A stretch of DNA of 64,000 bases from Ministeria vibrans ATCC 50519 (taxonomy: Eukaryota; Protista; Filasterea): contig CALSCP010001679.1 of NCBI GenBank assembly GCA_943704425.1, positions 83,430 to 147,429 on the forward strand, given 5' to 3'. Shown piece after piece: positions 471 to 59,532 of this stretch (position 1 is its first letter; every line of letters begins with the position of its first letter). Both the position numbers and the translations under genes were made by a program. Under the pieces are notes generated by a model. That model saw nothing but the letters and a program-made list of their open reading frames with translations, was not told the DNA's origin and searched no databases.

Positions 471-1607
471 CACAGGCCGAGTACAAGGATACTTTCAAGC
501 CTACTCCTCCGCTTCATCAACACCCCCCTTGCGGCGCCTCCGTCTGCGTCTGCCGCTGAGCCGGCGGCCCGCTGGCTGCGCGTCGGTGCTCTCGTGCGCT
601 TCCTGGTAGGCTTCCTCGCGACGTACGTTGTCTTTGCGCTCGCGACCGCCATGCTCTTCGCCTCGTCCGTTGCCGACGGCGCCCGTCTCGGCTTTGGCGC
701 CCTCTTCATGGCTGCTGGCTTTCTGGCCTGGTCGGGCCGTCTCGATCCGCTTGCGCTGCCCGTCTTTGCCGATCCGCTGCTCATGGGCTTCTCGTATGCC
801 CTCCTCGTCACCGTCAACCCCTGCACCGTGCCCTTCCTGGCCTTTGTCCTCTCCCTCCACACCCACCATGCTCTCCCGGCCCTCCTGGCCTTTGGCTGTG
901 GCCTCGTCTCGCCCGCCGTTGCCTTTGCGATCATCGGCCGTTCGGCTCTCTCCTTCTTCCGCCGCAACGCACAACTCCTCAACCGCCTCAACCGCCTCAT
1001 GAACATCGTGCTCTTCTGCAGCGGCATCTACGTCGCCGCCGGCACCTGGCTCATCACACCAGCCAACACCGTCGTCAGCGGCGTCTGTCTCATCGCCTCA
1101 CTGCGTCTCCTCTTCACGCGCTCCTTCGATCCCGCTCTGCCCACCACTCGCTGGCGCCAACTCGCCCTTGTGCTTGCCTGCACCACCACCTCCATCTTCA
1201 TCACCCTCTGCCCCCTGCCCTTCCTCCACGACCAGTCTCGCCACGCCTTCATCGCCCTCGTCCTCAACACCGACCCTAGCACCAGCCACTCAGACGACTC
1301 CTTAGACACCGACGACGACGACTCATGGCTCGCCACCGTCAACACCACCACCACTGCGACAGACCTCAACGTAACCTCCGACACACCTACGCTTACCAGT
1401 GACTCAACTCTTCCCTCTCTTCTTCTCCCTTGCGACCCCCAGACGTCACTCAGTCCCACCGGTGGCTGTGCTCCAATCGACTTACTCGATCCATGCGATA
1501 CATGTCAAGTCTGTCTTGCGCTCTATCTGCTTGCCGTCGTCTCCGTTGCGCTCTCGCTTGCAATGCACTTGAGGGCCACTCTCAAGAAACAAGCATTGCC
1601 CACGTAG
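471..1607 (+). CDS. Polytopic membrane protein with a CcdA/DsbD-like transmembrane redox domain; 5' end lost in the gap
   Basis: Eight or more hydrophobic helices. GFSYALLVTVNPCTVPFLAFVL...LLAFGCGLVSP...RLMNIVLFCSG resembles the second PC-motif half of CcdA/DsbD-beta. There is an acidic Thr/Ser loop and a C-terminal CDTCQVC before the last TM. Confidence 0.6.
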   Translation, partial: HRPSTRILSSLLLRFINTPLAAPPSASAAEPAARWLRVGALVRFLVGFLATYVVFALATAMLFASSVADGARLGFGALFMAAGFLAWSGRLDPLALPVFADPLLMGFSYALLVTVNPCTVPFLAFVLSLHTHHALPALLAFGCGLVSPAVAFAIIGRSALSFFRRNAQLLNRLNRLMNIVLFCSGIYVAAGTWLITPANTVVSGVCLIASLRLLFTRSFDPALPTTRWRQLALVLACTTTSIFITLCPLPFLHDQSRHAFIALVLNTDPSTSHSDDSLDTDDDDSWLATVNTTTTATDLNVTSDTPTLTSDSTLPSLLLPCDPQTSLSPTGGCAPIDLLDPCDTCQVCLALYLLAVVSVALSLAMHLRATLKKQALPT

Positions 1608-1795: not shown

Positions 1796-3241
1796 TTACA
1801 AATAGGGCAAAAGTGGCTCTCTCGTCTGCACTTTGCGCTCTCTCTTTTTGCGTTCCGTTTCCGTCAGCTCAGCCAATCGTACTTTGCGCTCCCACAAACT
1901 CACTTTCCGGCGCATTTCCGTCACTTCCCCCTTCAATCGCACATACTCAATCACATCGGGCGCTCGATGCGTTTCCCGCATTTTCCGCTCCCTCTCGTTC
2001 ACTCGTTCCGCTCTTTCCCGCTCCTTTTCCGCTCGACCTAATTCCGTCTCAATCCGTCCAATCAGATCTTTCCGCTGCTCCAACTCACTCTGGGCCCTTT
2101 CGCTCGTCCGCAGTGCTTGTTCTAGCTCCTCTTTCAGTCGCCCCAATTCCTGTACACCCAAATTAAGAATATAATATAATAACAATATTCATTAATTTTT
2201 ATTTTTATGATTGGTTCAATTTATTTTGTTGATTGTGTGTGTTTTAAATGTACCTTTTGTGACTTTGACGCAATCACTTTCAATCGACTCGTTTCTGCAT
2301 TTTTCTGCTTCACAATTTCATGTCGTTCATCAATTTCAATGCGCATCCGATCCATATCGACCGCATGAAGAACCTTAAAAAAAATTAATCATATTCGACT
2401 GTAACATCCATGTCATTTTTTTGTACCTCTCCCTTCTCCTCCTTTTCTTTGATCAATTGAAGCGTGCGCAAAATCTGTCCTCTCAGTGTTCCATTGCGCA
2501 AGCGCAGCTTTTCAATGGTTCCGTCGCGCTGGCGTTGCTTCTCTTCGTGAAAGCGGATGAGTCGCTCGGCCGACACTGCGCCACTTTGACTGGTGCCCTC
2601 CGCCGCCTTCCGCTCAAGACTACGACGGAAATCAAACTCAAACATGCGCTGATCCAGCGTGGACTGCTCGTGTTCTTCGCACACAGACCGAAGAGTCGAA
2701 ACCTACAAGTGAAATATACAATTATATTATAAGAATGATGATCAATGATGTAATGTTATTACTATCATTTATAATCATAATACTAAATGATTCTCTCTCT
2801 CCGATCTTCTTTACCTGTCGTTGCATCTGCTCCTTTGCTCTCTTGTGCAGCTTCTGAAGACGTTCAAGTTCCCCATCGGCAATGAGAAACTTCTGCTCAA
2901 ACGTCAGAGTGAGCTCGTCACACTGATCGTCCGAGACTGAATCAACAGTCTCGTGCATGCGCTGCTGTTCCTGCTCTCGCGACGCTGTCGACACATTGTC
3001 CCACGTTTCGTCGTCGTGCCCGCTTGCTAGATACGACTCAAAAAGTTGATTCTCAAGCTCAATCTCCTGCGAAATATATAAAAGCGATGGTTGCCAAGGA
3101 AACCAATGTGTGTGTGTTTGTTTTTACCTTATTGCGCCTTCGCGCATCCTCTAACATGGCCTCCAATTCACCCGTGGGGTACTGGTCCAACGTGGCCGTA
3201 AGGTCAACGAGTGTTTGCTCAGTTTCTTTGATTGATGTCAT
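1796..3241 (-). CDS. CCDC113: Cilia/flagella coiled-coil protein CCDC113/CFAP263 (DUF4201); exons 3241-3128, 3066-2815, 2702-2427, 2373-2254, 2149-1796
   Basis: Motifs ELENQLFESYL, LTFEQKFLIA, LHAVDMDRMRIE and PDVIEYV...SLWERKVRLAEL match the CCDC113 family. All introns are GT-AG and phase 0. Confidence 0.85.
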
Positions 3242-3308
3242 TGTACAAACAGAAAAAATAATAAAATCCAATCGATTATCAGAGAAGAAAAATTGTACAT
3301 TGTAGTGA

Positions 3309-6300
3309 TCAACTCTCTGGGTCCGTTCCGTACTCACTCTCGTCGGTGCTGAAATTCACATCGAGCAACGGCGCACTCAGCTCTTTCTTGACGACGTCGG
3401 CATACGTGAGCGGACACAACACTCCCTCTGCGTCTCCCACCGCCTCCTCCCCCTCCTTTGTGTTCTCGTCCACTTTCTCTGTCGGCATGGATGTGTTGCG
3501 TATCGTCTCAACACTCGCACGAATAGGACGGGGCAGGCAGAAGCGGAATGGGTAAAGGAGACGCGCAAGACGGAGGGTCTCCGACGAGTCCTGGAGCACG
3601 TCGCGCGCACAGCGAAATGCCTCGAGAAAGTGCGACATGTCACTCTGAAAGCACTCAGTGGTCAGTTTGTCGGGCGACGAGAGGGTAAAGAGCAAATTGG
3701 AATAGTGCATAACATAGCGACGGGTCGCAGTCAGACGCAGAGTGGCATCGACCATCAAGTGGCGCACAGTCGAGCGCAACAGGTCATTCTGCGCAAACCG
3801 CAGTCCGTCAAAGGTCAACAATGACTCCTCCACTAGCCCAAAGAGCAGTTCTTCTGTCTCCTCCACAGGCAGCGCAAAGACCGAGGCAGCCGCACACGGG
3901 TCAAACGGAGTGGCAAAGATCGAAAGAAGCATCATGGAACTCTGAACGAGAGAGAGAGTCAGTATATCACGAGATCGATGAAAGAGTGAAAAGGACCTTT
4001 TGCTCTTGTTCGAGCAGATTGAACGTCTCAATGAGCCCAATGGATTCGGCGAGTTTCGCTTTGGGGTGATCTGCAGACTCATCGGGCGCACTGAGGCGCG
4101 CAAGAACACCCTCAATGCGACTGAGTGAGAGGCGTTTAAGCTGCGAGCTGAGCACACGAATGGCAAGTGGGAGGAAAGACGCAGCACGAGCAAGTTGGAG
4201 GGACAGCGAAGCAGTTAGGGATGGTAGGAAATAATGCACGAGCGACAGACTAGTAAAAGTGATGGAGAAGGGAAAACGAACAGAGAGAGAGAAAGAGAGA
4301 ACGTGATGGAATTGAGTAAGTGATTGACTAAAGTGTGTGTTTTTCTACCTTGATTCCTCTGATAGCTCACCAATTCGCCTAAACCACACACACACAAAAA
4401 AAAAAACAATATTAAGCAAAAAATAATAATAACGATAACTTTGGTACAGATTGAGTGCGTTTGGCGCAAAAGACTCAATTTCAATGCGACGCCGCGATGT
4501 CACCAACACAAGAGCATCGTGTGCGCGCGGAAGAAGATCCTATGTTGACACACAACATTCATCATCAAACACCAAAAAAATTATTATGGTCAAAGTGCGT
4601 GACTCTTACAGTGACAAGAGAGAGATTGGAACAGTTTTCAATCACAAGAATTGAACGTTTTCCGCTAAACACGTGGTTGTATTCAGAGCGAATATGCCCA
4701 CTGTCCTTTCGATCAATGTGCTACAAGAGAGAAAATTCAATTCGATAAATTAAAACTTGATTCGTTTGATCACTTGTTTTACCTTTTCCGGGAATTTGGT
4801 GTGAATAATAATCGTCATAGCGTCTTCAATGGATAAATACTGGAGCAAAGATAGAGAGAGAGAGAAAGGAAGGAGAAAGAAACAAAGTGATAAAGAGAGA
4901 GAGAAAGAAAGGAAGGAGAAAGAAACATAGATAGAGAATAAGTAGTTAATCTATTGCAAAATCGACAAAATTAAAAGACGAATAATTTAATGTACTTTGT
5001 CGTTTTCAAACCCTTTGAGACTGACAAAGAGCCAATTGTGCGGGAAAATGGGTCTGAAACGCTCAGCCAATCTCTGAGCGAGAGCGGATTTACCCGCACC
5101 GGCAGGACCAAAGAGACAGACCACGTGACAGCTCACGCGCGAAGACGAAAAGACGCGCTGTTCAATCAACTAACAGACAGCAACAGAAAAGTAAGAAGGG
5201 ATAAGGAACAACAAAAAGAGATAGAGGAAGGCAGGGAGGGAGAAGAATCGTAAAGGAAGAGAAAACAAACGAGAAAGCGTGAGGGTCAAAATTGGCACAA
5301 TAATGAAACACACAAAGATAAATTAATACTACTAATCCTACATGACAATCAGGTAGATAGAAAAAACTTTACACGTAGTATTGTAAAATGACAACCCGGC
5401 ATAAAAAGGGGGTTTGTTTGTACCTTAATTTCGGATTCTCTGCCAACCAATTCCGGCGAGACAATCTCAGTGTCCTCATTCGCACTTGCGTTGACTTTCC
5501 ACGCGCGAGACAGTCTCTCTTGCACAAGTGACACATCTAGTACCTGAAATAGCCAATAATTAAAGAGGCTTCTGACGCTTCGGTGGATCAGATTGTGCTC
5601 TCACTTCAACAGAGCCGTCGCGTTTGATGAATGCGTGTCCTGTGTTGTTGAAGTAGACGGGCGAAATTCCCTTCGAGACATGAATCTCGAGAACAAAGAA
5701 GTCCGGTTGGTCGTCTGCGTTGTACTCGCGACGTCCCTTGCGCTGCTGCTGCTGGTGGTGCTTGGACGACGCAACTTCGTCAATGTACATCTCAATCTCG
5801 TCGTCGTGTAGTCGTGCGCCTTTGCGTCCCTTTTTGCTTTTGATTGGGGATGTGGGTGATCGAGCTTGCTGGGGATGGTGGGATCGTTGTACAGGTACAA
5901 GGCGGACGCGCAACAATGACGGATCAACCTACAACAGAGTCTGCACAGTGAACTTATCACTGGAGTTTCATACCTGAGGACGAAACTGCCCAATCTACAA
6001 AAGCGAATGCAACAAATGAGTCCAACGCACCCCCAATCGGTTGCCAGTGCACCCAAGTACCTGTGAGTCGATAGTCAAGTGGATGTCGTCGCGCTGCTTG
6101 CGCGTAAGCAGCATTCCGCGCACAACGCCATTGTCTACACACCACACGAACTCACATCGACCAAACACCCACTAAGCACCACATTCCGCGCACCTTCAAT
6201 GCCGCAGTACAACGTCCCGCCGTCCGTATTCTACAAAGACGCCCCAGGAGTCAGCCGCAGTGCCGTGGGAGCGCACAGAGAGCGTACGAGAAAGGCATTG

Positions 6301-6438
6301 ACATATTTCTTGACGTGCACAGCGACAAGACCCGACGTGCACCGCTTGAACTCATGGTACCGGTCCTCCTCCATCACCACTCGCTCCCCTTTGACATAGA
6401 AATCACGTTCGTCCATAACGACAAAAATTAGGAGAAAG

Positions 6439-6472
<34 letters not shown>

Positions 6473-7203
6473 GGCTGACACGAGAAAAAAAAAAGGAAGA
6501 ATAAGGAGTGAGACGTACGGATGGGGTCAGCGGGGAGGGAGGGGGGTAAGAAGTCGTGGAGGAAGTGGTGGTCCAAGTCCATGGGGTCGGGGTGGTCGGG
6601 GGCGGACAGGGGCGGACTGGCTGCCGCTGTCGTCGGGTTGGAGACGGAGCTGCGTCGGGAGCCAAAGCTCGACGGCGTCTCGTCGTGCGAGCAGCCCGCC
6701 GTCCATGCCCGCACGTCGCTCATCCGGTCGCACCACGACGCTACACCATCCCGTTAGTATTGCGCAGCCGATGAGTCACGCGATGAGAAACGCTTTAAAA
6801 AAAATTTTTTTTTCACACACACACACAGAGACAGAAGGAGACGCAACAACCACTCGGACTCCATACCGGTCTGTAGCATAGTGGTCCAGTACGCAGGGGC
6901 TGACGTGCTATCCGTGAAGGCGCCTTTCCTTCGTTTCTATAAGCAGAGTGTTTAATATATTCAGCGTGTCGCATTTTTTTTTTTTTTTTTGAAAAAGCAA
7001 TGAGGAGAGCGTACGGAGAGGGAATGAGGGAGGGAGGCAGGATCGACATCTTCGGGGGCAGCATCGTCGAAGGTAGACGAGCGGCGTTTGTGCGAGCGAC
7101 GGCACGAGATGGAGATAGGGAGACTCGAGCCAAAGGCGGGCGCGCGCTCTTCGGGCGGCGATGCGGACGTCCACGAGCCGCTCGAGGGCGAGGGGGTATC
7201 CAT
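3309..7203 (-). CDS. Schlafen AlbA_2 nuclease domain fused to an NB-ARC/AP-ATPase STAND NTPase and winged helix, ~835 aa; exons 7203-7015, 6936-6867, 6740-6519, 6388-6288, 6230-6194, 6134-6061, 5994-5974, 5928-5605, 5543-5424, 5169-4996, 4839-4783, 4720-4610, 4539-4448, 4378-4349, 4249-3997, 3941-3309
   Basis: The spliced frame reads EEDRYHEFK..KYVNAFL|NTDGGTLYCGIE|DNGVVRG..RDDIHLTIDSQ|IGQFRPQ|VDP..AFIKRDGSVE (AlbA_2). It continues LVGRESEI, Walker A GPAGAGKS, Walker B ILVIEN, sensor-1 LLP..VLVTSRR, LRIGELSEE, FLPLAIRV, and wHTH LSIF..PFD..AAASV..LVEESLL..RFAQNDLLR. Exon lengths sum to 2508 nt, in frame. The first three exons are less certain. Confidence 0.85.
6439..6471. repeat. Poly(A)/poly(T) tract inside an intron
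   Basis: About 33 consecutive A on the + strand. Confidence 0.9.
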
Positions 7204-7346
7204 GGAGGGCGCGGGGGGAGGGCTGTGGTGGACGGGTCTGTGGCTTGGTTGAGGCGATGGGGAGACAATATTTGATTGAAATAAGGATTCATTTATTTGG
7301 GATTTTGGGTCGAATGACAAATTATTATTGATAAAGGTTGACGATT

Positions 7347-7551: not shown

Positions 7552-10500
7552 TTACATCCATTTGTGGGCATACGACGTGGCAAGTTTGGACCAAGAAGAG
7601 ACGGCGGAGCCCTTTGAAGAGGAAGCAGATGTCGCATCGCATACCGTCGAGATAACTTCGGATCGCTCTTCCGGACTAAACTTGAGCAGCTCTGCCAGCA
7701 CTGGCACCACTGCCGGTCGTCCCTTGGCATCCAATGCAAACTTCAACACCACATTCTGAAAAATAGAGAGAGAAATAAGGGAGACAAGCAAACAAAGTGA
7801 GTGAGAGAAAGAAAGAAAGGAAGGAGAAAGAAAGAAACAAGAGAGAAACAAAGTGATGGGAAAGAATCAAGATTATACAAAAGGGAATGAGAAAACCAAT
7901 GATCGAATAGTGAAATAAAATACTATAATTATATTATTACCTTGAGATACTCAAGGTTGACCGACTCCTCTTCGCGCTTGGCATTGCGCTCGAGGCGACG
8001 AATCTCCTCCTTGAGAACCTTCTCCTGCATCAATGCACGCCCCACATCTTGCTCATACTCATGGACCATTTCCCGCAGTCGCGCAATTTCCTCCCGCTCA
8101 GCCTCCGCCAGAGCCGCAGTGCCCTCATCATCGAGCCTTGTGCTACTCTGAGCTGAGTCGCGTCCTGTGCCATTGCGTACACCCTTTGTGAGCAGACGCG
8201 AAAGGAACACAGATGGGTTGAGCACAGCACCAGACAAGCGCGTGCTCTCCTGCGTCTCCGGCTCACGCCCACTTGTATCGTGCTCCTCCGCACTCGACTC
8301 AGATTCTACCCCACCCTTCTTCTTCTCCACACTCTGCTGCTGTCTCAATCGCTCCTGATCCCTCAACCGCTCCAACTGCTGCTGCAAGTCCACCGCCTCA
8401 CTGCGCATCTTCCGCACAAGCTCACCCGAACGCGTCTCCCGCTCCACAGCCTTGGCCTCGGCTGCCGTCACGCGCGCCCCCATTGCCGCCAACTCAGTCG
8501 CACGCGCACTCAATTCTCCTTCCATCTCGTGCATTCGCGTGCGATACTTGCCAGCCGCACTCTCACTCGTCACAACAAGTGCCTCGCGCGCTCGCACGGC
8601 CTCGTCCCGCTCTCGCTCCGCCCGCGACACCCGTTCCTCCACCTCCTCCTCGAGTGCCACCAGTCGCTCGCACGTTCGCTCCAGCTCCCCTCGTGTCACC
8701 GCCACTTCATTTTCCAACTCCCGTACGCGCCCCGTCGCCGCCACAAGTGCCTCAAGTGAGGTGCGCGACGTAGACGACAATGGTGTCGACGGTGCACTGC
8801 CAGACTCCACCACCACGACGCGTGTTGCCTCTCCCTCCGTCTCCACTGCCGCCTCCTCCACAACCGAAATGGTCTCGGCGTCCCGCTGTCGCTTAAGCAC
8901 TGCCTGAGCTCGCACCTGGTAACTGCGGTACTCCTCACGGACCCCGTCGAGCTCCTCTTGCACCTCCGTTGCGCGTTTCCGAGCGCTCCGCGCACCCAAC
9001 TCGGCCGACTCCAATTGCACCTGTAGCTGCGCTGTACTCTCAGCCGTCGTCACACGCAATACATCATACTCCTCACGCACCCGCTCATACTGCTCACGCG
9101 CCTCTGTTGCACTCGTCTCCATCACCGCCATCTTGCCTTTGAGGTCATCCACTTCCCGTTTGAGTCGCACGAGCAGGCCGCGCATTTTCGCTCCCTTGTC
9201 CGTTGTCTCCACATGCGCTGCAGTCTCTCCCGCCAACTTCTCCCGCAACACCCGTGCCTCCCCCTCCGCCGCATCACATGCACTTGTCTTTGCCGCCAAC
9301 TGCGCTGCAAGCGCCTCGACACTCCTCGAGGCGTCCTCCAACTCCAACTGCAACATCGACTGTGCACTCTGCACGCTGCTCGCCTGTCCTTCTTTCTCCC
9401 TTTCTAATTCCCCAATGCGTCGCGCGCTCACCTCCAACTCAGCCACAAGCGTTTCCACTCGTGCCTCAAGTGCACCACACTCGCGCATTTTCTCCTCCAC
9501 ACTGCCCTCCAGTGTCCCCACAAGTCGCTCGGCCGTCGCAGCGCGTTCCTCTATAGCACTTGAAACAGCTTGGGTCTCGTGCATCGCCCGCTCGTGCGCC
9601 TCACTCGTCTCTTCCAGCTCGCGCACTCGCGTACGTAAAAGCCCAATTTCTTCTTCAGTGGGCGCCACACTAGTTGTGAGTGGAGTCTCATCGACTGTTC
9701 TCCGGTCACTCAGTTGCGCCTCCAGCTCTGCAATGCGCGACTCGCTCGTCTGCTGTTCTTCCTCAAGTCGCGCCTCTAGCTCTGCAATGCGCGAATCACT
9801 CGTCTGTCGTTCTTCCTCAAGTCGTGCCTCCAGCTCTGCAATGCGCGACTCGCTCGTCTGCTGTTCTTCAAGTCGCGCCTCCAGCTCTGCAATGCGCGAA
9901 TCACTCGTCTGTCGTTCTTCCTCAAGTCGTGCCTCCAATGCAGCAACGTCCCCAACACTCGCCAACAGTCCCTCTTTGGCGCGCGTCGTTTGGGCCTCGG
10001 CAGTCGTGAGCGCCTCTTGCAGAGCAATGAGAGCCGCACCGTCGTGTTCGATCGCACCGTCGCCCTCCGCTTCCTTCTCCTCGACAGGCGATCTCCTTTG
10101 CAGGGCCTTAATTTCATCCTGCAATGCCGCAATCTTCTCTTCGGCAGCTGTGGCAGCTGTGGCAGCAGCAAGCGTGGTACTGGCAGCGAGTGCCTGTGAC
10201 TGGGCGAGCGACTCTTCGAGGTGCTTGATGCGATGCGCATCCTCAACCTGCTCTGCTGCGGCCGCCTCAAGACGTTCGACGGTCTCTTGGCGAAGCCTCC
10301 GCTCCGACTCAAGCTCGGCGCTCTTCTCTTGCAAGTCGCTCTTTGTGTTGGCCAGAGTTTGCTTCAGCGTGAGCAGTGCACGCTTCATTTTCGCATTGAG
10401 ATCATTGACGCGTGTTAGTTCTGCGTCCGGCACTGTTGCGTCAGCTGTCGTTGTAGTTGTAGGGGTAGCGGAAGGATGAGAAGAAGAGGACGAGGCGGCG

Positions 10501-11015
10501 CTTGGCGGTGGCGTAGCGTGCTCGAGAGAAGCACATCGCGCGGTGGCCTCGTCGTACTTGACCTTGAGCTTTTGCAGCATGAGCGTTTGTCGTCGAATGT
10601 GCGCATGCAGTTCTTCTTTGGTGCTGTCGGCGCCCGGTCCGCCAGAGCGGCGCAGCGATGACGAGGCGGGTGAGACGGGTGCAGACTGTGGCACAACAGC
10701 CTGTGGCGTACGGCGGCGCGGTGGTGTAGCGGCGTGGGGGCGAATGGGATGGAAGCCATCGTCGTCGTCGTCGTCGTCGTTGTCCTTCTTGTCGCCCTTA
10801 TCGCGGTTGCCGTCGTCATGGGCGCTCTTGGCAGCCACGTCCGCGTGCGCATTGCTGTGGCCCTGCGTCACGCCAATGGCTGGCGGGGGAGCGTGGGCGG
10901 GCTCGTCATCATGGGTGGGTTTGGCCATGTTGGATTTCGTCGCTTTGCTTGGCGACACTGCCCCATCAATGTCTTTCTCGACGTCTCGCAATGCATCTCG
11001 AATTGCCGAGAACAT
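7552..11015 (-). CDS. GRIP-domain golgin (GCC/golgin-97/245-like long coiled coil); exons 11015-7941 and 7755-7552
   Basis: About 1000 aa, mostly heptad coiled coil, including EYRSYQVRAQAVLK. The C-terminal GRIP domain reads VNLEYLK|NVVLKF..VVPVLAELLKFSPEE across a GT-AG intron. Confidence 0.9.
9716..9937 (-). repeat. Coding tandem repeat, about 4 x 57-60 bp (ARLEEE[R/Q]QTS[D/E]SRIAELE), ABAB pattern
   Basis: Directly visible in the DNA and in the golgin translation. Confidence 0.9.
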
Positions 11016-11212
11016 TGTTAAGCCAAGAGGCAAAAGCCAGAAAGATTTGATCATTGATGAATGATGATCAGCAATCGTCTCACTCTCACTTTAACAGTTG
11101 ACTCTCCGTTTTAGTCTTCTACTTCTTTTTCCCCCCTTTTTTGAGCTTACTGCTTCATTTTGCAGTTCTTGCCTTTTTTTTTCGATCGAGTCGCTTGGAG
11201 GTCAAAACAGCC

Positions 11213-15118: not shown

Positions 15119-18100
15119 ATGACAACATCGGCACAGACGCCCGCCATGACGGGCCACAAATACGCAATTGTCATCGGACGAACATTTTTCAACTCGAACA
15201 CGCTCGAGCTTGATACGCTACCAGGGGTCGGGGCGACGGTGCGCAACATGGCGGTTGNNNNNNNATGACGGGCCACAAATACGCAATTGTCATCGGACGA
15301 ACATTTTTCAACTGGAACACGCTCGAGCTTGATACGCTACCAGGGGTCGGGGCGACGGTGCGCAACATGGCGGTTGACCTTGTGCGCAACGGGTTTAAGA
15401 CGGTCGTGCTCGCAGACACGCGCATGGCGCTGTCGCAGCGCTCGTTCGACTCGCCGACGCTGGAACAACACTACGTCGACTTTGCGGTCGATGCGACGCA
15501 GACGCAGAAGCTGTCGTGGGTGCAGGCGGACACGACACGCCCACACATCCGCACGGCACTCGTTGGCCTGGCTGCCATGGGCTCTGGGCACCTGCCGGGT
15601 CCGCTCGACGACTTGGTCATTTACATCTGCTCGCACGGCGTCCTCAACGCCAGCGACGGCTCGTACGGCGCAGCACTCGCCGACGTGCGCTGCACCAAGC
15701 CGAGTGTCACCGATGCGAACGGCGACGTTGTGCACCCCGCCCAGTATGCCGACGCGTACACGATGGAGCAGTTGCGCGACGACTTGTGCGTCGAGCAAGA
15801 GCAGCGCTGGCGCAACACTCTTGTGGTGCTCGACACGTGCCACTCGGGAGGGGCGTTTGATGCGACGGAGGTGTCGTTGCGCGACTGTGGCACGCAGAAC
15901 ACGCACGACATGCAGAGGGTGTTCCAGAAGGAGTCGTACCAGTGCTTGGCGGCGGTGCCCTGTTCTGCGTCGGCGTTTTGTCTGGAGCGCGGCACGGTGC
16001 TGCACATGGCGCTGCGACGAGCATGGCTGTCGCCTGGTGGCGATGGTGGGGCGTTTGCGCGAGCGCGCGAGGGAGCGGCGCGGTGGGCGACAATTGGACG
16101 CGTGGCGGACCGTGTCAATGTGGAACTGACGTCGCTGATGACGGAGATTGTGCAGAAGATGCCGGCGCATCTGAAGGAGCCGGACGACGCGTACTTCTTC
16201 CGACAGACGTGTCTGTTGGGCCGACTGCCGTGGCGCGTGGCGCACAACACGGGGGAGTTTGTGGTGTTCAACGGGAAGTACACGGAGCGCAACAAGCTGG
16301 CCATGGTGCCTGGTGTGCCGGCGAGTTTCACGGGACGCGCGAAGGAGTTGAGGCAGTTGGAGGCGCGACTGAAGCAAAGTGGGACTGCGGCGATTGGGAA
16401 CGTGACGGTGTCGGCTGCGGGCGGAGTGGGCAAGAGCACACTGGCAGCGGAGTATGCGCGACGGAATGCGCATGAGTACCACTGGATCGTTTGGGTGCGG
16501 GCAACGAGTGCGACGACGATGATGGGATCGTATCGGGAGGCAGTGCGGTACATTCCACTGAAGCATGTGGATTTAGCGAACGCAACGAATGAAGAGGTGG
16601 TGGGGGCAGTGAAGGAGTGGCTGGCGCACGAAGGAGGATGGTTGATGGTGATGGACGGATGTGATGCGATCACAGAGGAGATGAGTGAGATGATGCCCGG
16701 TGGCGTGATGGAGGGGAAGGTGGTTGTGACGACACGATTGCGTCGTGTGGATGAGTTGGGGGCGTTGTTTGGAGGAGGAGATGCACCGTTGCAGTTGGGG
16801 GTGTTTGACGAGGAGGAGGGAATGGAGTACATGCGCAAGCGACTGGCGGGTCGAGCAGATGAAGATGAGGAGGTGCAGAAGATTGTTGCAAGGTTGGGAG
16901 GAATGCCACTGGCGCTTGAGTTGGCGGCAGCATATCTGGTGGAGACGCCACATGTGAGTGCTGGAGAATATGGCGCACGGATGGAGACAGACATATTGGG
17001 GACGTTGAAGAGGCGGAATGGAGCAGGGGGGTTGGAGGATCGTGTTGTGGCGACGTACGAGCCGGGTGTTGCTCGGGCGATGGAGATTGGCGGGCGGGAG
17101 ATGGTGCGGAAGATGGTTGGAGTGATGGGGTTTTTGGAAGGGAGTGGGATGGAGGTGGAGGTGCTGCGGCTGGTCGTGGTGGGGGAAAGGAAGAAGGAGA
17201 AGGTGGAGGAAGACGAGTTTGACGTTGCACTTGGTGCGTTGTGTCGACTGTGTGTGGTTGATGTGAGCAAGAGTGTGGTGTCGATGCATCAGTTGGTGCA
17301 GGATGTGTGTCGGGTGGTGGCATTTGGAGATGAGGAGGAGATGTGGAGGGAGTTGCAGAGGATGGGGAGCGTGTTGGAAGAGGAGATTGGCAAAGATGCA
17401 CATATTTATGAGGATATGGAGTGGAGTCGACGCGTGGGAGTGCATGGAACGCGAGTGATGGAGTGGGCGTGTGCTGAGGTGGGGAGAAGGCGGAGGGGTG
17501 GAGAGACGGAGGAGTACGGCGATGGTGTGGTGTGGCTGGGAATTCGGCTGAGTGTCGTGTGGAGATTTTTGGGAATGTATAAGTTGGCTCGGAGTGCGGC
17601 TGAGAGTGCGTGTGATTGTGTGTGTGATAAGAGGTGTGCGCTTGCTGGGAGTGCGTTTGGGACTCTAGGCGATGTTTGCAAGTACCAAGGGGAGTATACG
17701 CGAGCGTTGGAGGTGTATGGTTGGGCAGTTGCGATTCAAGAAGAGAAGCTGGGGACAGATCATGCTGAGACTGGCGACACATTGAACAACATGGCCATTG
17801 TGTTTCGGGCACAAGGAGACTACAGTCGTGCTCTTGAGTACTATGAGCGTGCTCTGACCATCTGTGAGAAGTCTGTTGGTCCCGACCACCCATCCACAGG
17901 CGACACATTGAACAACATGGCTGTTGTGTTTGAGGCACAAGGAGACTACAGTCGTGCTCTTGAGTACTATGAGCGTGCTCTGACCATCCGTGAGAAGTCT
18001 GTTGGTCCCGACCACCCGTCCACAGGCGACATATTGAACAACATGGCCATTGTGTTTCGGGCACAAGGAGACTACAGTCGTGCTCTTGAGTACTATGAGC

Positions 18101-19770
18101 GTGCTCTGACCATCTGTGAGAAGTCTGTTGGTCCCGACCACCCGTCCACAGGCGACATATTGAACAACATGGCCATTGTGTTTCGGGCACAAGGAGACTA
18201 CAGTCGTGCTCTTGAGTACTATGAGCGTGCTCTGACCATCTGTGAGAAGTCTGTTGGTCCCGACCACCCGTCCACAGGCGACATATTGAACAACATGGCC
18301 ATTGTGTTTCGGGCACAAGGAGACTACAGTCGTGCTCTTGAGTACTATGAGCGTGCTCTGACCATCTGTGAGAAGTCTGTTGGTCCCGACCACCCGTCCA
18401 CAGGCGACATATTGAACAACATGGCCATTGTGTTCGAGGCACAAGGAGACTACAGTCGTGCTCTTGAGTACTATGAGCGTGCTCTGACCATCCGTGAGAA
18501 GTCTGTTGGTCCCGACCACCCATCCACAGGCACCACATTGAACAACATGGCGAATGTGTTCAAGGAACAAGGAGACTACAGTCGTGCTCTTGAGTACTAT
18601 GAGCGTGCGCTGACCATCAAAGAGAAGTCTCTTGGTCCCGACCACCCATCCACAGGCAACACATTGAACAACATGGCGAACGTGTTCAAGGCACAAGGAG
18701 ACTACAGTCGTGCTCTTGAGTACTATGAGCGTGCTCTGACCATCCGTGAGAAGTCTGTTGGTCCCGACCACCCATCCACAGGCAACACATTGAACAACAT
18801 GGCTGGTGTGTTCCAGTTACAAGGAGACTACAGTCGTGCTCTTGAGTACTATGAGCGTGCTCTGACCATCTTTGAGAAGTCTGTTGGTCCCGACCACCCA
18901 TCCACAGGCCAGACATTGAACAACATGGCCATTGTGTTCGAGGCACAAGGAGACTACAGTCGTGCTCTTGAGTACTATGAGCGTGCTCTGACCATCAAAG
19001 AGAAGTCTCTTGGTCCCGACCACCCATCCACAGGCACCACATTGAACAACATGGCGAATGTGTTCAAGGAACAAGGAGACTACAGTCGTGCTCTTGAGTA
19101 CTATGAGCGTGCGCTGACCATCAAAGAGAAGTCTCTTGGTCCCGACCACCCATCCACAGGCAACACATTGAACAACATGGCGAACGTGTTCAAGGCACAA
19201 GGAGACTACAGTCGTGCTCTTGAGTACTATGAGCGTGCTCTGACCATCCGTGAGAAGTCTGTTGGTCCCGACCACCCATCCACAGGCAACACATTGAACA
19301 ACATGGCCATTGTGTTTCGGGCACAAGGAGAATACAGTCGTGCTCTTGAGTACTATGAGCGTGCTCTGACCATCAAAGAGAAGTCTCTTGGTCCCGACCA
19401 CCCATCCACAGGCCAGACATTGAACAACATGGCCATTGTGTTCGCGGCACAAGGAGATTACAGTCGTGCTCTTGAGTACTATGAGCGCGATCTGGCCATC
19501 TGTGAGAAGTCTCTTGGTCCCGACCACCCATCCACAGGCCAGACATTGAACAACATGGCTGGTGTGTTCCATGCACAAGGAGACCGAACTCGTGCCCTCG
19601 ACTATTGGCAACGTGCTTTGACCATCCGTGAGAAGTCTCTTGGCCCCGACCACCCGCACACCAAGCAAACCCGCAAGTCCCTCAGTGCCCTCCATCCTAC
19701 CGCACAACCCGCATGCCTCACCAACTCAACGAAGCCCCCAAACCAATCTGCCGACTGTATCATACTTTAA
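15119..19770 (+). CDS. NLR-like protein: caspase-like peptidase C14, NB-ARC/STAND, 15+ TPR repeats (42 aa) and a C-terminal CaaX. Intronless; the 5' end is duplicated across a gap, and the intact ORF runs 15265-19770.
   Basis: His/Cys dyad VIYICSHG...VVLDTCHSG. STAND motifs FTGR, Walker A AAGGVGKST, WLMVMDG, VVVTTR, GGMPLAL and SMHQLVQ. Kinesin-light-chain-type TPR units TLNNMA.VF..QGDYSRALEYYERALTI.EKS.GPDHPS. Ends CIIL*. Confidence 0.93.
15146..15376. other. 112-bp direct duplication flanking the N gap at 15258-15264 (probable scaffolding overlap)
   Basis: 15146-15257 equals 15265-15376 except for one base (TCG vs TGG codon). Confidence 0.85.
17770..19659 (+). repeat. Tandem array of 15 x 126-bp TPR-coding units
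   Basis: Exact 126-nt period. Units 3-5 are identical in protein, and units 7-8 recur as 11-12. Confidence 0.97.
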
Positions 19771-21237: not shown

Positions 21238-23425
21238 TTACACAATCGGAAAATGCTCAACGACAGACGGCAACGGTGTGTCATCAGAGTCAGGCATCTG
21301 AGGCAACGCCATGCTCAACGAAAAGTACACATCTTTGGGTGACACATTCACCGTGAACACAAGCAACTGATCAAGTGAGACAGGCAACAGCTCTTGCAAC
21401 GGCAGCGACGCCTGGGTCGCCGTCTCGCCCGACGACGCAAACAACTGCGGCACCACCGTGCCATTCTGTGACACAAGCGCCACCGATCCGTCCGCCGCCG
21501 CAGTCAGGTTCCACCCAACTGAAAACGATACAACTGCCACAGTGGCACTCTTGCGCACTGCATTCAGTCCTCGCACAGCGAGTCCCCGCAGCTCATCCAC
21601 GATGGGCACGTCCACCGCAGAACCCACAGTCGCCCACATGCCCGCTCGATTCCGCACTCGCCCGATCACTCGAATCACTCGACCCGTCTTCCTCTCCTCC
21701 TCTTCATCGACTCCACGCATCGCCACCATATTCACCAAATCTCCATTCTCAAGCTTGATACTCTCCACCAGTCGTGTCACAGTGTCATTCACACGAATCT
21801 CCACTGCATCCACTCCGCTCTCGGCATCGGTGCACCCCACGAGACGCACAGCAAGTCGGTCACGCCGGTGCACCCACTCAGGCGCCACCAGCCCACCCGA
21901 GCACAGCGGACCCGTCGCATCCGCACGCACCCCATTGCTCCGCAAGTGTACTGTGTCTCCCTCACTACCCACACCCACTTCCACTCGCGCTTCGTACTCC
22001 ATGTTGTGCACCAGTGCCAGTCCCTCCACCTGTGCCGCATACGCTGTCAGATTCCGCGCAAGTGGTCCCGCCACAAGCACGCCCGTTTGTTTCTCATGAA
22101 ACGACACAGTCACCATCGGTGCACCCACAAACAGCTGTTCGTTGCCCAGCGACGCCACCGCCGCCAACCAGTGCACCCCTAGCACCCCTTGCGACGCATC
22201 CACCACATCGATATCATTCGGCGTTGCACTTGCCGTTGTCGTCGTCCCGTTTTGCCCCGCTGTGTCCACCACAGCCTCAAAAGGTGACTGCACCAACACT
22301 CGCCGGACCCGTCCAGCAGCTTTGCTCCATCCCGTCGCCCACAGTCCCGCTCCATTGCGGCACTGCACTCGCGCACGGTACGACACCCCTTCGTGGAACA
22401 CCTCCGTCGCACTCACGACTGCACCATCCATCGAAACAGTTGCCACCCGCCCTCCGTCCACCACCCACACCGACACGTCCTGGCCGTCCACGCCACTCTC
22501 GCTGTCACTGCACGCCTGCCAGGTGACCATTGCATGCGTCCCATTCGCAACGGTAAGTGACACGTTGGCCACAAACGGCGCACTCGTGTCCACGCGCAGC
22601 GGCGCACTCGTCCCATTCGTCCACGTGATGCCATCGCACGCCAAAGCACGCACAAACGCACGCACACTCGCATTCTGTGGCGTCCGCTGCCACTCGTCCG
22701 TCAACGACACAGATGACACGTCGCTCAGTGGCACAGCCTGTTCTGGAATCAACACTTGACCGGTAGCATCCTCTTCGAGTCCCACCAACACCTGCTGGCG
22801 GCACTGACCCGCACCAAAGGCTCCACCATGCCAGCTCACAGTCACCGCCCCACCACGCATCAAGAACCCACTCGAGGTCGCCAGGGGACCCAACAGAACA
22901 CGCGTCTCCGCCATGCCCACGCATGGAACCATGCCCGTCGCTTGCACCGCTGGCACCACCGTGCTCACATCACTGCAAACGTGAACAAGCCCCCCATCGT
23001 CGTACTCTGCCAGCACGCACGCCACAATGGGCTCCATGCGTACTACCAACACATTGGCAACGACCACCGTGGTACCATCCGCAACACCGCACTGCTGGCG
23101 CACCTCAGACTTGCCCACCAGTTCAATACACGTCCGTGACTCGACCGGCTTGGCTCCCCATCGTGCACCCGCCAATCCCGTCACATTCACCGACACGTCC
23201 ACTCGAAGCGCCGATGCACAATCACTCGCCCACGCCCCTTGTGGCTCCCACGACACAATCGATGTACGCGGCGCACTCGCGGCGAGAACTATGGGAACAC
23301 CAGCAACGTCTTGACACGCAAGCTGACGCACCAGTCCCGCAGCATTCTCCACGCGCACCGTCACATACACGCGTGTGTCGTCCGAGTGCACACTCACCTC
23401 GTCCGCCGCCACACACACGTCCACA

Positions 23426-23466
<41 letters not shown>

Positions 23467-26400
23467 CGCCGTGGCCACCGCCTGAGCTAGCTCATCGGAC
23501 GAAAGCGCACGCCACGACACTACGTCGTCGTCGCTGCTGGCACGCCCCACCGCATAGCGAATGGCCACAATCGGACTCGCACTGTCCGCCACAGAGCCAA
23601 TGGAAAAGAGGGGTACACAGTGCGACGCGTTGCTCGAGCCTAGACCAGGCACACGCACCGCCTCCGCGCAGTTCAGAGTCACCGCGTCAGCACTGGTAAA
23701 GTCCACACGGAACGACCCCGTTCCATTCGACGTGCCGCAGTCGCCACAGTGACTACACACCGTCGCCACCAAAGTACACTCATCGCCGTCACTCAACACC
23801 TCTGCCAGCGGCATATGCGTCTCCGTCACCAGACCCGTCGCCACAACACCACTCTCCACCGGCACCTCGATACGTCCCGAGATGGAACACTCCACAGCAA
23901 CAGACCAGTTGGCAGCGCGAGCACACGCGCACGAGCGCACACCCATTTTCACAGTGTCCCATCGCACTCGCAACCGATCCGTGTCACGCAAATACCCATC
24001 ATCTTCGTTCACTCCCACCATACTTGCGGACACATTCACCGTATTGCACGCTGCCACAATGGACGACGACGTCACGTTGTGCCGCACAGCACCACCGACG
24101 CCATTCACAACCCGCACCTGCAAAGAGTACGTGTGACAGGCACGCACAAACTCGCTCACGGCCGTCATCGAGTACACAGACGCCTCAACACTCTCCGACA
24201 ACACAACCCACTCGGAGACTTCATCCACGCCTACCAGTCGCACCGACACCTGTGCCACACCCGACTCCACATCACGCGCGTCCAACTCAAGCATCACATC
24301 ACTCGTGGCATTCTCCAGCACACACTGCGTCGAACCAAACAACCGGGCGCGCAGCACCACGGGCACGGTCCAGTCAAGGACCACTGCTCCCTCAGGACGC
24401 AACTCGCCATTGACCACGGGCAACGCTCGTGTCGTCGACTCCTGCTCGCTCACCGTACACACACACACCCACGTATCGCCATCGTCGGTCGCACTTGCAC
24501 AGGGGCCACAGCCACCAACAACAATCTCTCCATCGCGCTCACGCACAAGATTCACCGTCAGACTCGCGTCTGTGGTCACGACAGTCACGTTTACCGCCAC
24601 CTCGCCCGTCTCAAGCAAACGCGACTCGCTTTGCACCGACAACACTGTCTGTGACACGCGAGACGTTGGTGCCACAGGCGCACCTGCACTCTCAAGCACG
24701 CCCACCAGTCCCGCAGCGTTGGTTGCCGTGCACGACACCGTCGTTGACCCATTCACGCCCGACACACGCACAGGACCCAGTGTCAGTCCATGGCCCACAT
24801 TGCTGCGTCCATCTCCGCGCATCGGTCGCATCGGCACACGTCCCACAAGACTGCCCGCGTCCGTCTGGCACACATACGCAAGCATGCCGCTCTCCTCGTC
24901 CGCACATCCATTGACAAACGCCGTCAACGAGTCCGCACTGGCAATCACCGTGTGCACTCGAGAGTCGCTGCAATTGGGCGCGGTCGTGTCCAGCAACAAC
25001 TGTACCACCGACGCGTCACTGATACGCCCTGCCTCATCCACAGCCACCACCTCGACGCGGTACACTTCCCCTTCGCTTGCAAGCACCGTCGAAGGCACAG
25101 GCCATTCGACACGGCCACCAAAGCGACGCGACGCCGTCACCACACCCGCACTGGTAGATGCAGTCGTTGTGCCCGTCACTGCGCTCACAACGCGCACCCT
25201 GTACTCAAGCACGCTGCTCACGTCGTCCGCAAACGCATCCCACACAAGTGTCAGAGCGGAGGCATTTGACGCGACAAACACACGCTCGCCACTCTCGTCG
25301 ATGTGCGCACGTAGCCACGAAACTCCCTGTGCGCAAGAGAGAGGTGACGTGGCATGCGGTGCAGCTGTGTCGATCCACAACGGAATGCTGGTGACCGAAC
25401 GAGCATAGAGCTGGGCCACGTTGCGCACAAGGAATGTCACATAGAGCGCCTGTGCTTCGGGAAGTCGTTCAAATGCGTCGGTCGTCACCACTGTGCCTGC
25501 ACACGTCAATGTCTGTCCTGCCGACGCCGTCACGGTCCAGGCAAGCGCATCACCTGTCAATTGCGCACCGCCGGCCGCCGAACCAATCATAACGAGACCA
25601 TCCACCAGCGCCGAGTCAACGTCTCCAACATGGTTCACGCACACGCTAAGTTGCGTCGCATTGCCATCGTGGCGCAGGTACACTGCCGAGTCGCTCGCAA
25701 CCACATTTTCCATGACACTCGTGCGCCACTGCGCCTGGCCAATCGTCGGCGCCGTTGTGTCGATCACTAGCGCACCCGAAAGCACACGTCGACACCCGCC
25801 GGCGCCGTTGCACGCCACGACAAACGCACGCAAGCGATGCCCATGCGCCAAAACTGGCAGGTCGCTGGGAACACGCAATGCGAGCTCGGTGCGCAGTTGG
25901 ACATCGCGCGCGTACGCCACGGTCCACACAAGCGACCCGTTGGCATGCTGCGTGCCATCGTTCTGCTCAACTTGCACAGAGAAGGCCGCAAGCGGACTCG
26001 CTCCCCCCGACTCAAACAGGTCCCAGCGCACCACTATCGAGTCTGCTTGCGCCTGGCCCACCTCGGCCAGGTCACGCGTGGCATTTTCGCGACGACGCAC
26101 CTCGGCACGGTCCACCGGCACAAAGAAAACGCGTCCTCCGAGGACACCCGCGTCGTCGTGTGTCAGCGCAATGCGCTCGCGAGTAGACACGGTCATGTTG
26201 GCACGATTGGTCGCGTGCAACATCGAATACACCGTCGTACCGGTGATGTTCACGTCGGTACGGTACACTGGTGATGAGGTCGTGGCCGGATTCACATCAA
26301 CGCACGCCTGTGCATCAAGCCCCTCCATACACCAACGTAAACTCGCCAGTCCCGTCTCATCGTCCGCCGCCTCAAACCGCAACCCAACACGAGTCGCGTC

Positions 26401-29400
26401 GCGCGTCCAACGACCCGACACATGCGACACTCCCGTCAACGTGGGTGCCGTCGCATCCGCCACAAACCCATCCGAGGCACGACGCGTCTCCAGACCCCCA
26501 CCATTCACCGCACGCAACCACACATAGTAGCGTGTGCCACTCACAAGCGAGTCGGTGGCAAAGGTTGTCGACAGTGCATACACAGACGCGGCCGGAGTCC
26601 ATGCAATGGCAAAGGCCGACTCGGCAACCGCCACCGTGTGGGGGTCGCTCAGCGTGGTCACAGCAAAGTCGAGACTCACAATGCCCGTTTCGTTGTCGGC
26701 CACCGAGTCCCACGCCACAGTTGTCAGCACTCCCGCACCGACTGCCAAAAACTCCGCATCGTGCAATGCGCCAATGACCGGAGCTGTACTGTCCAGTACT
26801 GCCCCGTCCGATACCACCGCCACAGCGGCCCACAGGCCCGCACCATTGGCAGCACGCACCGAACACGCATAGGCGCGGCCCTCGTCAAGCGACGCACTGC
26901 CAAACGTCACACTCGTCGCTGTGCCCGTCAGCTTCTGCACAGCAACACTCGGCTCGTTGCTCCACGACGCCACCTGTAGCCCCAGGGTGTCACCTCGCAA
27001 CAGTGTCACTTCAACATGCATCACCTGCGAATGTGCGTCGGTAAACAGCGTCGCGGGCCAGCGGCAGGAATACGACGACGCGTCCATAAACCAGTTGCGG
27101 TCGTGCACGCCAAGCCCATCAGCGACGGTCAGACCCGTCGCAATGACGGGCGCGCTCGCGTCCACAAGCACGCCGTCGCTGTACGTCTGCGTACGCAATC
27201 CCGCCGTGTTGCGCAAGTCCAGCATACACCGATACCGCACGCCGTCGACAAGCGTCACGCCCGCAGAAAACACCGCCGTGCCATTAGGCAACTGACTTGC
27301 CGTCAGATTAAGCGCACCCAGTGCACACGACGACGCCTCCGTGCCCACACACACCGTGGCTCCCGCAAGTCCCGAGTGCACATCCTCAACGTCACGCCAA
27401 GCGCATGCCAACTGTGTGCTGTTCGTCTGTGTCTGCCTGTCCGCCATATCGTCGTCGTCACCGTCAACGAGTACACCAACCGTGGGGCGAGTCGCGTCGA
27501 CGAGCAGACCGTCCGTCACAACGGCACTCGTTGATTCCAGCGACGCTCCATTGCGTGCCCACACATGCGCATACACCGTGGTACCTGACGGTACACCGGC
27601 TCCCAGTGCCGGAGCACACAAACAGCCTTGAGCTAGCTCCTGCACGGTGGAGCTGGCCTCCGCCAGTGGCACACTCGCATCCACAGCGCTTGCACTCCAC
27701 ACCACATGGTAGCTCGCCACGGCCGACTGGGCATCGCCAAAGCCCGACCACGACACACACAAATGACTGCTGTTCGTCGACAGGTCAGCGTCCATCGCGC
27801 CACATCCGTCCCATGACGTGCCCGTCGTCGGTGGCGTCGTGTCCACCACTGCGCCATTCGACACGCTGCGTCGTCGCAGTCCCGCCCCATTCACCGCCCA
27901 CACCACCGTGTAGACAGTGTCGCCATCCGCAACGGCACCCGTCGCAAGCGACGTGGTCGCTGAAAGAGTTGTCACGGAATGCACCGCACCCAAATTACAC
28001 GCGTCGGACCCACTACTGTCCACGCACACCTGGTACTCGCTGATGCCCGACTCATCGTCAACACTCGCCTCCCACGACGCACTCACAGCGGCGGTGGACG
28101 GCACAAAGGCCAGGTCAGCACCGTTCGTCGCAGACGGTCGATCGTTCACAGAGAACGCTCCGGGTGAGGTCGTGTCCACTCGGAAGCAGTCCGAGTGAAC
28201 ACGTTCGCTCCAGACTTGCGCTCGCCCGCGCACCTGCACGCGCGTGCACAGCAAGCTCGAGTTCATGCCACCGAGAGCCGCGTTGGTCCAGGTGAACGAC
28301 AGGGGTGATGCACTCGCACTCACCACCGCCCAGTCGAGCACGAGACTCGCGGTAAGTTCGGTGCCACTCGTCACCGACACCCGATACGAATCGAGTGCAA
28401 ACGCATTGGCACTTGTCGCGGCCGTCCACGACGCCGTGAATGTATCTCCCTGCGACACATAGTCGGCGTCCGAGCCGGGGCACGACGCTGACATATCGCA
28501 CACCGACAGTGAGGACACATCGGGCAGCACATTGTCCACGTCGGCACCGTCCGTCATGGCCATCGTCGTCAGGCCTGCACCATTCTCCACCATCACCGTA
28601 GCGTACACGCGCTGTCCATTGGGCAGCGTCAAGCCAGTGAGTGTCGCACACGGCGTGTCATTCTCAACCAGAGTGAACGCCGCCAGCTGCATACCTCCCA
28701 TGCTTGTGCCCAACGCCACTTGCGCCCGCTCCATAAAGCCACTCTCAACATCTTCTGCATCCCAGCACACAGTGTACATTGAGACAAGCGGCCACACGTC
28801 CACGTCGTCCGACGCATCGAGGCCCAGCGACGTTGCATACGGCAAATCCACCACAAAGTTCACGGTGGGAGCAGTCGTGTCGGCCGTGACCAGCACACTT
28901 TGCGAGACCATACGCAAACCCGCCTCGTTCACGGCCGTCACCACAGCGCGGTAGCGTGTGCCGCTCACAAGCTGATGCCCGCAAAACGAGTTGAGATTGG
29001 TGCTCGCCGTCGGCGATGACACTCCTGCATCCGTCACCGCCTGTGTCGCCTCGTCAATCACGTGCACTGTGTACAGCACGTTGGTGTGTGGGTCCACTGC
29101 TTGTGTCCACTGCAGCGATACACAGTCAAGATCGCTCCAGCCCGTGACGCCCTCGTCCGCTCCGCGCACCCACGATACCGAAAAGTTTTGAGGGGGCGAC
29201 ACGTCCGCCACAAACCCATCGGAACACTTCTCGGCTGTGTGACCGACTGCATCGGTCGCACGCACACACACGGTGTAGAACGTTCCCTCGGTGAGCGACA
29301 CCTCGCTCAACAGCATGCCCACATTGGTGGCACTCAGCGGTAGCGACTCGGTGTGCACCGCAGCAGCGATGTTGGTGGCGGAGGGACGCGGGTGGACGCT

Positions 29401-59495: not shown

Positions 59496-59532
<37 letters not shown>

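Follow-up and report, generated by a model that had tools for sequence, protein, structure and literature searches.

Positions 3309–6416 of the 64,000-nucleotide window analyzed here (Ministeria vibrans ATCC 50519, assembly GCA_943704425.1, contig CALSCP010001679.1, positions 83,430–147,429 of the forward strand; all coordinates below refer to this window) hold, on the minus strand, a real gene that is present as a single copy, has 13 coding exons and was found to be expressed in three studies. Residues 1–195 of the predicted 684-residue protein are likely, but unproven, to form a divergent domain of the AlbA_2/Schlafen type, and residues from about 225 to 530 are assigned, with support from comparison to other proteins of the same genome, to an NB-ARC-type STAND (signal transduction ATPase with numerous domains) NTPase that comprises a putative winged helix-turn-helix (wHTH) and lacks a repeat sensor. 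Taken as a whole, the gene may thus code for an NLR-like protein that combines a probable AlbA_2 nuclease with an NB-ARC switch and cuts RNA under control of the STAND module, a reading that we consider about as likely as not.

The source genome is eukaryotic (29.7 Mb, 2,860 contigs), and inspection of the open reading frames (ORFs) at 3309–6416 on the minus strand did not reveal a single ORF covering the locus. In the three minus-strand frames, short coding segments alternate with spacers that are rich in AT/CT and have GT and AG at their ends. A search of public sequencing runs with sampled words of positions 3200–6800 retrieved nine runs from three studies in which about half of the words occur, which is the share expected if only the exons are represented; DNA runs contain 95–98% of the words. 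RNA contigs of the runs X1, X3 and X6, which stem from three studies and carry three organism labels, were aligned together with the DNA run X19 to positions 3000–7250. Splice joints were found exclusively in the three RNA runs and not in X19, and all joints in the RNA contigs read CT..AC on the plus strand, equivalent to GT..AG on the minus strand. A contig of 2,119 nt from X3 covers positions 6425 to 3276 and includes every exon, a contig from X6 bridges exons E to I, and a contig from X1 ends in a loose T20 stretch at 3279, marking a poly(A) site 30 nt past the stop codon. The transcript extends over 3279..6425 (minus strand), with a coding part from 6416 to 3309 and a poly(A) tail added at about 3279; its 5′ end enters a poly-T tract (6426–6479). 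Joints and contig arithmetic define 13 coding exons and 12 introns, each intron with GT and AG. The exons, translated one by one in their own phases, add up to 2,055 nt, i.e., 684 codons plus stop, with the start ATG at 6416, the stop codon at 3311–3309, consistent exon phases, and a frame that is open throughout. The three RNA sources deviate from one another at only five codons; three of these changes are synonymous, none introduces a stop, and the frame remains intact in each source, the counts being too small for a statistical test. No paralog of the gene was found in its own genome.

An earlier sequence-only reading of the window had proposed that a gene not visible in any single ORF is assembled by canonical splicing of small exons, and the RNA bears this out for the exons of 21 nt (D), 30 nt (K) and 37 nt (B). 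The intron of 254 nt at 5170–5423, which that reading had named as its weakest link, is spliced out in three of three RNA runs (X1, X3, X6), so that the nuclease-like N-terminal half and the NTPase half belong to one gene rather than to separate genes. The proposed number of 16 exons has to be reduced to 13, because exons E and M are unbroken in the RNA, and of the proposed extent (3309–6388) the end at 3309 holds, but translation would begin with the ATG at 6416 and not at 6388.

Two further observations concern the transcript. In X1 alone, a contig joins 5544 to 5169, i.e., the intron between exons E and F is kept and exon F is skipped; since this places a stop 14 codons past exon E, the isoform would either yield a product consisting of the N-terminal domain only or be non-productive. 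The start codon is immediately preceded by a run of about 54 T residues (minus strand; 6426–6479), within which the transcript contig starts and at which the contigs of all runs, DNA as well as RNA, are interrupted.

The N-terminal half is encoded by five exons, all on the minus strand. Exon A (6288..6416) provides the ATG (6416–6414) and residues 1–43, including the sequence E17-DRYH-E22-F-K24 (6345–6368), which conforms to the Ex4(E/D)xK motif. Exon B (6194..6230; 37 nt; joints 6230/6288 and 6134/6194), with the sequence NTDGGTLYCGIE, codes for residues 44–55 and contributes the first base of the codon of D56, which is completed by exon C (6061..6134; 74 nt; residues 57–80, beginning NGVVRG and containing the acidic residues D71, D72 and D78). 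The stretch GGTLYCGIE-D-NGVVRG, in which D56 represents a later acidic residue, thus spans the B/C junction. Its GG..G.ED.G..G pattern presumably resembles the PF04326 (AlbA_2) consensus. Exon D (5974..5994; 21 nt; joints 5994/6061 and 5928/5974, the latter cut +2) adds residues 81–87, and exon E (5605..5928; residues 88–195) would complete the AlbA_2-like domain on its C-terminal side. Exon E contains strand-like stretches (FFVLEIHV at 5677–5700 and AFIKRDGS at 5611–5634, with PVYF between them) as well as a basic insert, about 60 residues long and rich in Q/H; as exon E is unbroken in the RNA, this low-complexity insert is coding.

The Ex4(E/D)xK motif is the logo motif of 5,930 prokaryotic Schlafen domains analyzed in a 2026 study, in which RorSlfn5 was inactivated by the exchanges E15A/D20A (PMC13056530). 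The active sites of SLFN and SAMD9 proteins comprise three to four acidic residues, and the AlbA_2 site of the bacterial protein Avs9 consists of E14, D19, D45 and E65 (PMC12680541). In the protein described here, the distance of the motif from the N-terminus is the same as that of E15/D20 in RorSlfn5 and of E14/D19 in Avs9. E17, E22, K24 and D56 are candidates for catalytic residues of the predicted AlbA_2 domain; judged by position, D56 and D71, D72 or D78 are candidates for further acidic site residues. A language-model search of a protein atlas gave scores of 0.88 for exon E and 0.86 for exon A, both below the 0.9 line and in a range which the tool rates as leads only; PF04326 was the sole named family among the nearest clusters of each of the two exons.

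A few other matches to exons A and E were rejected. Residues 64–102 of exon E (5620–5737) share 38–42% identity with individual repeat units of FG-GAP/VCBS proteins from bacteria, with phmmer E-values down to 5e-14; these values are inflated, since they result from the sum of four to seven weak repeat matches, and the similarity was taken as chance. The FG-GAP interpretation also fails because the Pfam FG-GAP models do not match exon E and because the atlas points to PF04326. The matches of exon A to phrog_933 (E 0.01) and of exon E to phrog_22815 (E 0.054), both families of unknown function, were likewise treated as chance; phrog_22815 matches only Bacteroides among the control genomes. The same applies to the nearest phage tblastn matches to exon A, which were srh genes of the T4 type (E ≥ 2). 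No meaningful match to the exons was obtained by tblastn in plasmids and phages. Exon A yielded no candidates in a word-indexed search, and two metagenome scans were blank.

The second half of the protein starts with exon F (5424..5543; residues 196–235), a linker ending in LVGRESEI, the usual lead-in to the P-loop of STAND proteins. Exon G (4996..5169; residues 236–293) contains an intact P-loop, the Walker A sequence GPAGAGKS (5086–5109; residues 256–263, with K262), and is followed by exon H (4783..4839; 57 nt; residues 294–312; positions 911–967 of the X3 contig; joint 4720/4783). Exon I (4610..4720; residues 313–349) provides a Walker B-like sequence, SILVIEN (4634–4654), with E340-N341 in place of DD, and exon J (4448..4539; residues 350–379 plus two bases) a sensor-1/RNBS-B-like sequence, LVLVTSRR (4489–4512). 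Exon K (4349..4378; 30 nt; residues 381–389; joint 4249/4349) has the sequence ELSEE at the start of ARC1, and exon L (3997..4249; residues 391–474) contains the GLPL-like sequence FLPLA (4162–4176), followed by ARC1 and the start of ARC2. The last exon, M (3309..3941; residues 475–684 and stop), encodes the putative wHTH/ARC2 region, with QND at the position of the MHD motif (FAQNDLL, 3777–3797); the approximately 150 residues past the winged helix are predicted to form helices and end in an acidic tail. These eight exons, too, are located on the minus strand.

With Pfam, exon G alone matched AAA_16 (2.8e-5), NACHT (5e-4), nSTAND3 (0.0027) and NB-ARC (0.021), the other exons being too short for this search. 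The genome itself contains at least 29 long intronless ORFs that exceed the PF00931 (NB-ARC) cut-off of 23.5 bits (best E-value 2.2e-31), and 23 of its NB-ARC ORFs were used to build a profile against which the exons were scored separately, with all filters off. Exon G aligned to profile positions 41–69 with 18.5 bits. SILVIEN of exon I aligned to RRWLLVVDGVW (126–136) with a score that was reached by 37 of 400 shuffled sequences, LVLVTSRR of exon J to kllVTTR (151–163; 1 of 400 shuffles), FLPLA of exon L to the glPLAl stretch (205–245; 6.7 bits; none of 400), and exon M to the wHTH (325–418; 1.1 bits; 8 of 400). The matches of exons G, I, J, L and M are collinear with the profile, which did not occur in any of the 400 residue shuffles, and their summed score of 26.4 bits was not reached by any of them (mean of shuffles –26.8 ± 8.5, maximum –4.4). 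With hhalign, the same order was obtained, with a probability of 95.9% for exon G and P-values of 0.01 (J) and 0.009 (L), while the control exons A and E did not match. The C-terminal half is assigned to the NB-ARC-type STAND modules because the exon matches are collinear, their summed score is not reached by shuffled sequences, and hhalign agrees. The locus was not listed in a six-frame scan of the genome with PF00931. AlphaFold2 modeling of exon M alone predicted only helices, at a pLDDT of 39.6 that makes the model unreliable.

With respect to the domains, the sequence-only reading had announced an ExxxxEFK motif and the Asp of GIED, both of which are present (E17..E22-F-K24, and GIED across the B/C junction). 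Its claim of a complete AlbA_2 domain is backed by the motif and by the two atlas leads to PF04326, but not by profile searches with single exons, leaving the domain likely but unproven. From the full series of NB-ARC motifs and wHTH that it described, Walker A, LVTSRR, FLPLA and a wHTH-like region are recovered, whereas the Walker B (SILVIEN) and MHD (QND) positions deviate.

The combination of a Schlafen-like domain with a STAND NTPase is a known design, represented by SAMD9/SAMD9L in animals and by Avs9 and bNACHT34 in bacteria; the idea that such an architecture had not been characterized in a eukaryote is therefore not tenable. SAMD9 and SAMD9L contain an AlbA_2 domain and a P-loop NTPase that resembles STAND proteins and is most similar to that of Apaf-1, within the family core architecture AlbA_2 – SIR2-like – P-loop – TPR – OB (PMC5445408), and their AlbA_2 site is reported to cleave tRNA-Phe and to shut down translation (PMC12680541). 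The protein encoded here shares with them a switch NTPase that would control a Schlafen-type nuclease, a likeness in logic. Unlike SAMD9/9L, which are proteins of about 1,590 residues with SAM, SIR2-like, TPR and OB-fold parts, it has only 684 residues, and Pfam searches of the exons found none of these parts. Since neither a SIR2 nor a TPR or OB match occurs in any exon, the protein would work like the SAMD9 family but is not a member of it.

In the bacterial antiviral STAND protein Avs9, an N-terminal AlbA_2 domain precedes the STAND NTPase, and expression kills cells by way of the AlbA_2 site (PMC12680541). The order of the two parts, the first of which is putative here, and the position of the N-terminal acidic site (14–19 residues from the N-terminus in Avs9) are similar in both proteins; however, Avs9 is bacterial and has SIR2, TPR and OB parts, whereas the gene described here has 12 spliceosomal introns. 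Scans of bacterial and archaeal genomes did not reveal a close relative of exon M. bNACHT34 likewise uses an N-terminal Schlafen RNase domain on a STAND NTPase as effector (10.1101/2022.07.19.500537), but its NOD (nucleotide-binding oligomerization domain) is of the NACHT type, whereas the motifs found here (TSR, FLPLA, and a wHTH with a motif at the MHD position) and the profile matches are those of NB-ARC. Mammalian SLFN11/12/13/14 and prokaryotic Schlafen proteins use tRNA cleavage as antiviral output, RorSlfn5 being a hexamer (PMC13056530). Both groups share the Ex4(E/D)xK motif with the present protein; the Schlafen domains of the mammalian and prokaryotic proteins are, however, combined with SF1 helicase, Ig-like, histidine-kinase-like, HTH or DUF262 parts and not with a STAND NTPase. 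The NB-ARC-TPR genes of the same genome, such as that at 15265–19770, encode the same kind of NB-ARC module with collinear motifs, but they are intronless, comprise 700–2,200 codons and contain TPR arrays, in contrast to the 12 introns, the lack of repeats and the different N-terminal domain observed here.

Plants, fungi, algae and protozoa yielded no such proteins in a survey of 2025 for which SAMD9/9L and Avs9 served as seeds (PMC12680541), and a full-text literature search did not retrieve any paper describing an AlbA_2–NB-ARC protein or reporting this design from protists. Given the outcome of that survey, a protist AlbA_2–NB-ARC protein without SIR2, TPR and OB parts would represent a new variant in a new lineage rather than a new kind of protein.

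By analogy to SAMD9/9L, Avs9 and bNACHT34, a trigger might allow the NB-ARC module to bind ATP and to oligomerize, whereby the nuclease domains at the N-terminus would come into proximity and be activated. The activated domains would cut tRNA or rRNA, resulting in a stop of translation as part of an immune or cell-suicide response. Both the nuclease activity and the immune or suicide role are, in this scheme, extrapolated from the known systems. The short C-terminal region could serve as sensor for the trigger, or the signal could be relayed by a partner such as one of the many NB-ARC-TPR proteins of the genome. Because a sensor domain is missing and the residues at the Walker B and MHD positions are odd, three options may be envisaged, namely a trigger acting on the C-terminal region, a trigger provided by a partner NLR, or a protein that no longer cycles. 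That a protist lineage joined a Schlafen/AlbA_2 nuclease to NB-ARC independently, as a further separate origin besides SAMD9/9L and Avs9/bNACHT34, and that the protein, being devoid of a sensor of its own, could serve in the manner of a helper NLR as a shared executioner switched on by the many NB-ARC-TPR sensors of the genome, is a speculative extension that we consider distinctly improbable.

A number of results weigh against the interpretation as a STAND-gated nuclease, and they lend themselves to other explanations. No AlbA_2 match was obtained when single exons were searched with Pfam (exons A, C and E) or with NCBIfam, PADLOC and the sequences of the PDB, nor in a six-frame scan of the whole genome with PF04326 (cut-off 25.3 bits). 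In a phmmer search against 1.84 billion representatives, exon E retrieved only its own genomic fragment of 76 amino acids and the FG-GAP/RTX repeat proteins, which are spurious; the atlas scores are within the lead-only range, and a hand estimate from composition, not a computed value, puts the chance of an Ex4ExK motif arising in exon A at about 1 in 10. The N-terminal 195 residues might hence be a lineage-specific orphan domain with coincidental Schlafen-like motifs, making the protein just one more NB-ARC protein. However, the AlbA_2-like domain is distributed among five exons that encode 7–108 residues each, and single exons of 12–43 residues are too short for the filters of HMMER; moreover, two non-overlapping exons independently point to the same Pfam family among thousands, and the published catalytic motif is located at the expected distance from the N-terminus, so that we consider an orphan domain unlikely. 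To a similar extent unlikely, in our view, is a domain that is indeed AlbA_2-like but serves as nucleic-acid-binding sensor or regulator, the protein being a MalT-like STAND switch that reports foreign or damaged RNA or DNA and leaves the output to another protein. AlbA_2 domains were first interpreted as DNA- or RNA-binding modules (PMC5445408), and in prokaryotes the fusion partners of most Schlafen-type domains are HTH or histidine-kinase-like parts (PMC13056530). The insert of exon E, being basic, could add affinity for nucleic acids, and the Pfam searches of the exons revealed no other candidate for a sensor domain. Yet the acidic Ex4ExK motif and the downstream Asp are kept, and a location N-terminal to the NOD is the usual position of the effector in Avs, bNACHT and SAMD9 proteins (PMC12680541, 10.1101/2022.07.19.500537).

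The remaining objections concern the switch. Walker B is non-canonical, with IEN in place of DD, and so is the MHD position, where QND replaces the H-containing motif of the paralogous NB-ARC proteins; owing to these departures, the NB-ARC switch may not cycle normally. In addition, exon M did not match TPR, WD40 or LRR models of Pfam, and the protein contains no recognizable sensor domain. Together with the absence of a paralog from the genome and the 5169/5544 joint in X1, which would truncate the frame, this might suggest a decaying or switch-dead NLR relic that is transcribed and spliced but has neither a working NTPase cycle nor an output. Such a relic is very unlikely, considering that the frame of 684 codons is intact across 12 introns, with three micro-exons among the exons, that splicing is the same in three studies, that the P-loop is intact, and that three of the five codon differences between the sources, too few for a test, are synonymous. 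The combination of a predicted AlbA_2 nuclease and an NB-ARC switch is the preferred interpretation.

RNA contigs of X1, X3 and X6 join a donor at 6519 (GT at 6518–6517), which belongs to an upstream gene on the same strand with exons at 7250–7015, 6936–6867 and 6740–6519 (minus strand; RNA contigs), to an acceptor at 261 (AG at 263–262), and both sides of this 6519/261 joint are single-copy. The corresponding “intron” of 6,257 nt would hold the AlbA-like/NB-ARC gene, a coiled-coil gene (about 3240–1800, minus strand) and a GC-rich ORF (471–1607, plus strand). Either the 6.3-kb intron is real and three genes reside within it, or the scaffolding of the block is wrong, an error that may be considered since an N gap (461–470) and the poly-T tract form its borders. 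A search for terminal repeats around the block yielded only low-complexity matches.

At a distance of 9 kb from the Schlafen-like/NB-ARC gene, an ORF of 1,501 codons on the opposite strand (15265–19770, plus strand) codes for an NB-ARC-TPR protein with an NB-ARC match at 16342–16941 and 16 TPR_12 stretches; of the long NB-ARC ORFs without introns that exceed the Pfam cut-off in this genome, at least 29 in number, none has a detectable AlbA_2 part. Three giant intronless ORFs at 31659–58790 (plus strand; 9,043 codons), 21238–30891 (minus strand; 3,217 codons) and 59188–61347 (plus strand; 719 codons) contain EGF, VWA and fibronectin type III domains, a repertoire resembling that of the extracellular matrix, and contrast with the intron-rich Schlafen-like/NB-ARC gene. 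The product of an ORF of 1,041 codons (7929–11054, minus strand) has no Pfam match at E ≤ 0.001.

Schlafen-type tRNA nucleases under the control of STAND NTPases are an immune module that is now seen as common to bacteria and animals. If the N-terminal domain is not AlbA_2, the gene adds one more orphan-headed NLR-like protein; if it is, the gene would be a compact example of the module from a protist, with NB-ARC as a different type of NOD. In that case, its division into micro-exons would be the reason why six-frame and exon-level searches miss the domain, and the combination would occur more widely, or have arisen anew more often, than one would conclude from surveys of annotated proteomes. 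With only 684 residues, the protein would also provide a small model for a STAND switch that gates a Schlafen nuclease.

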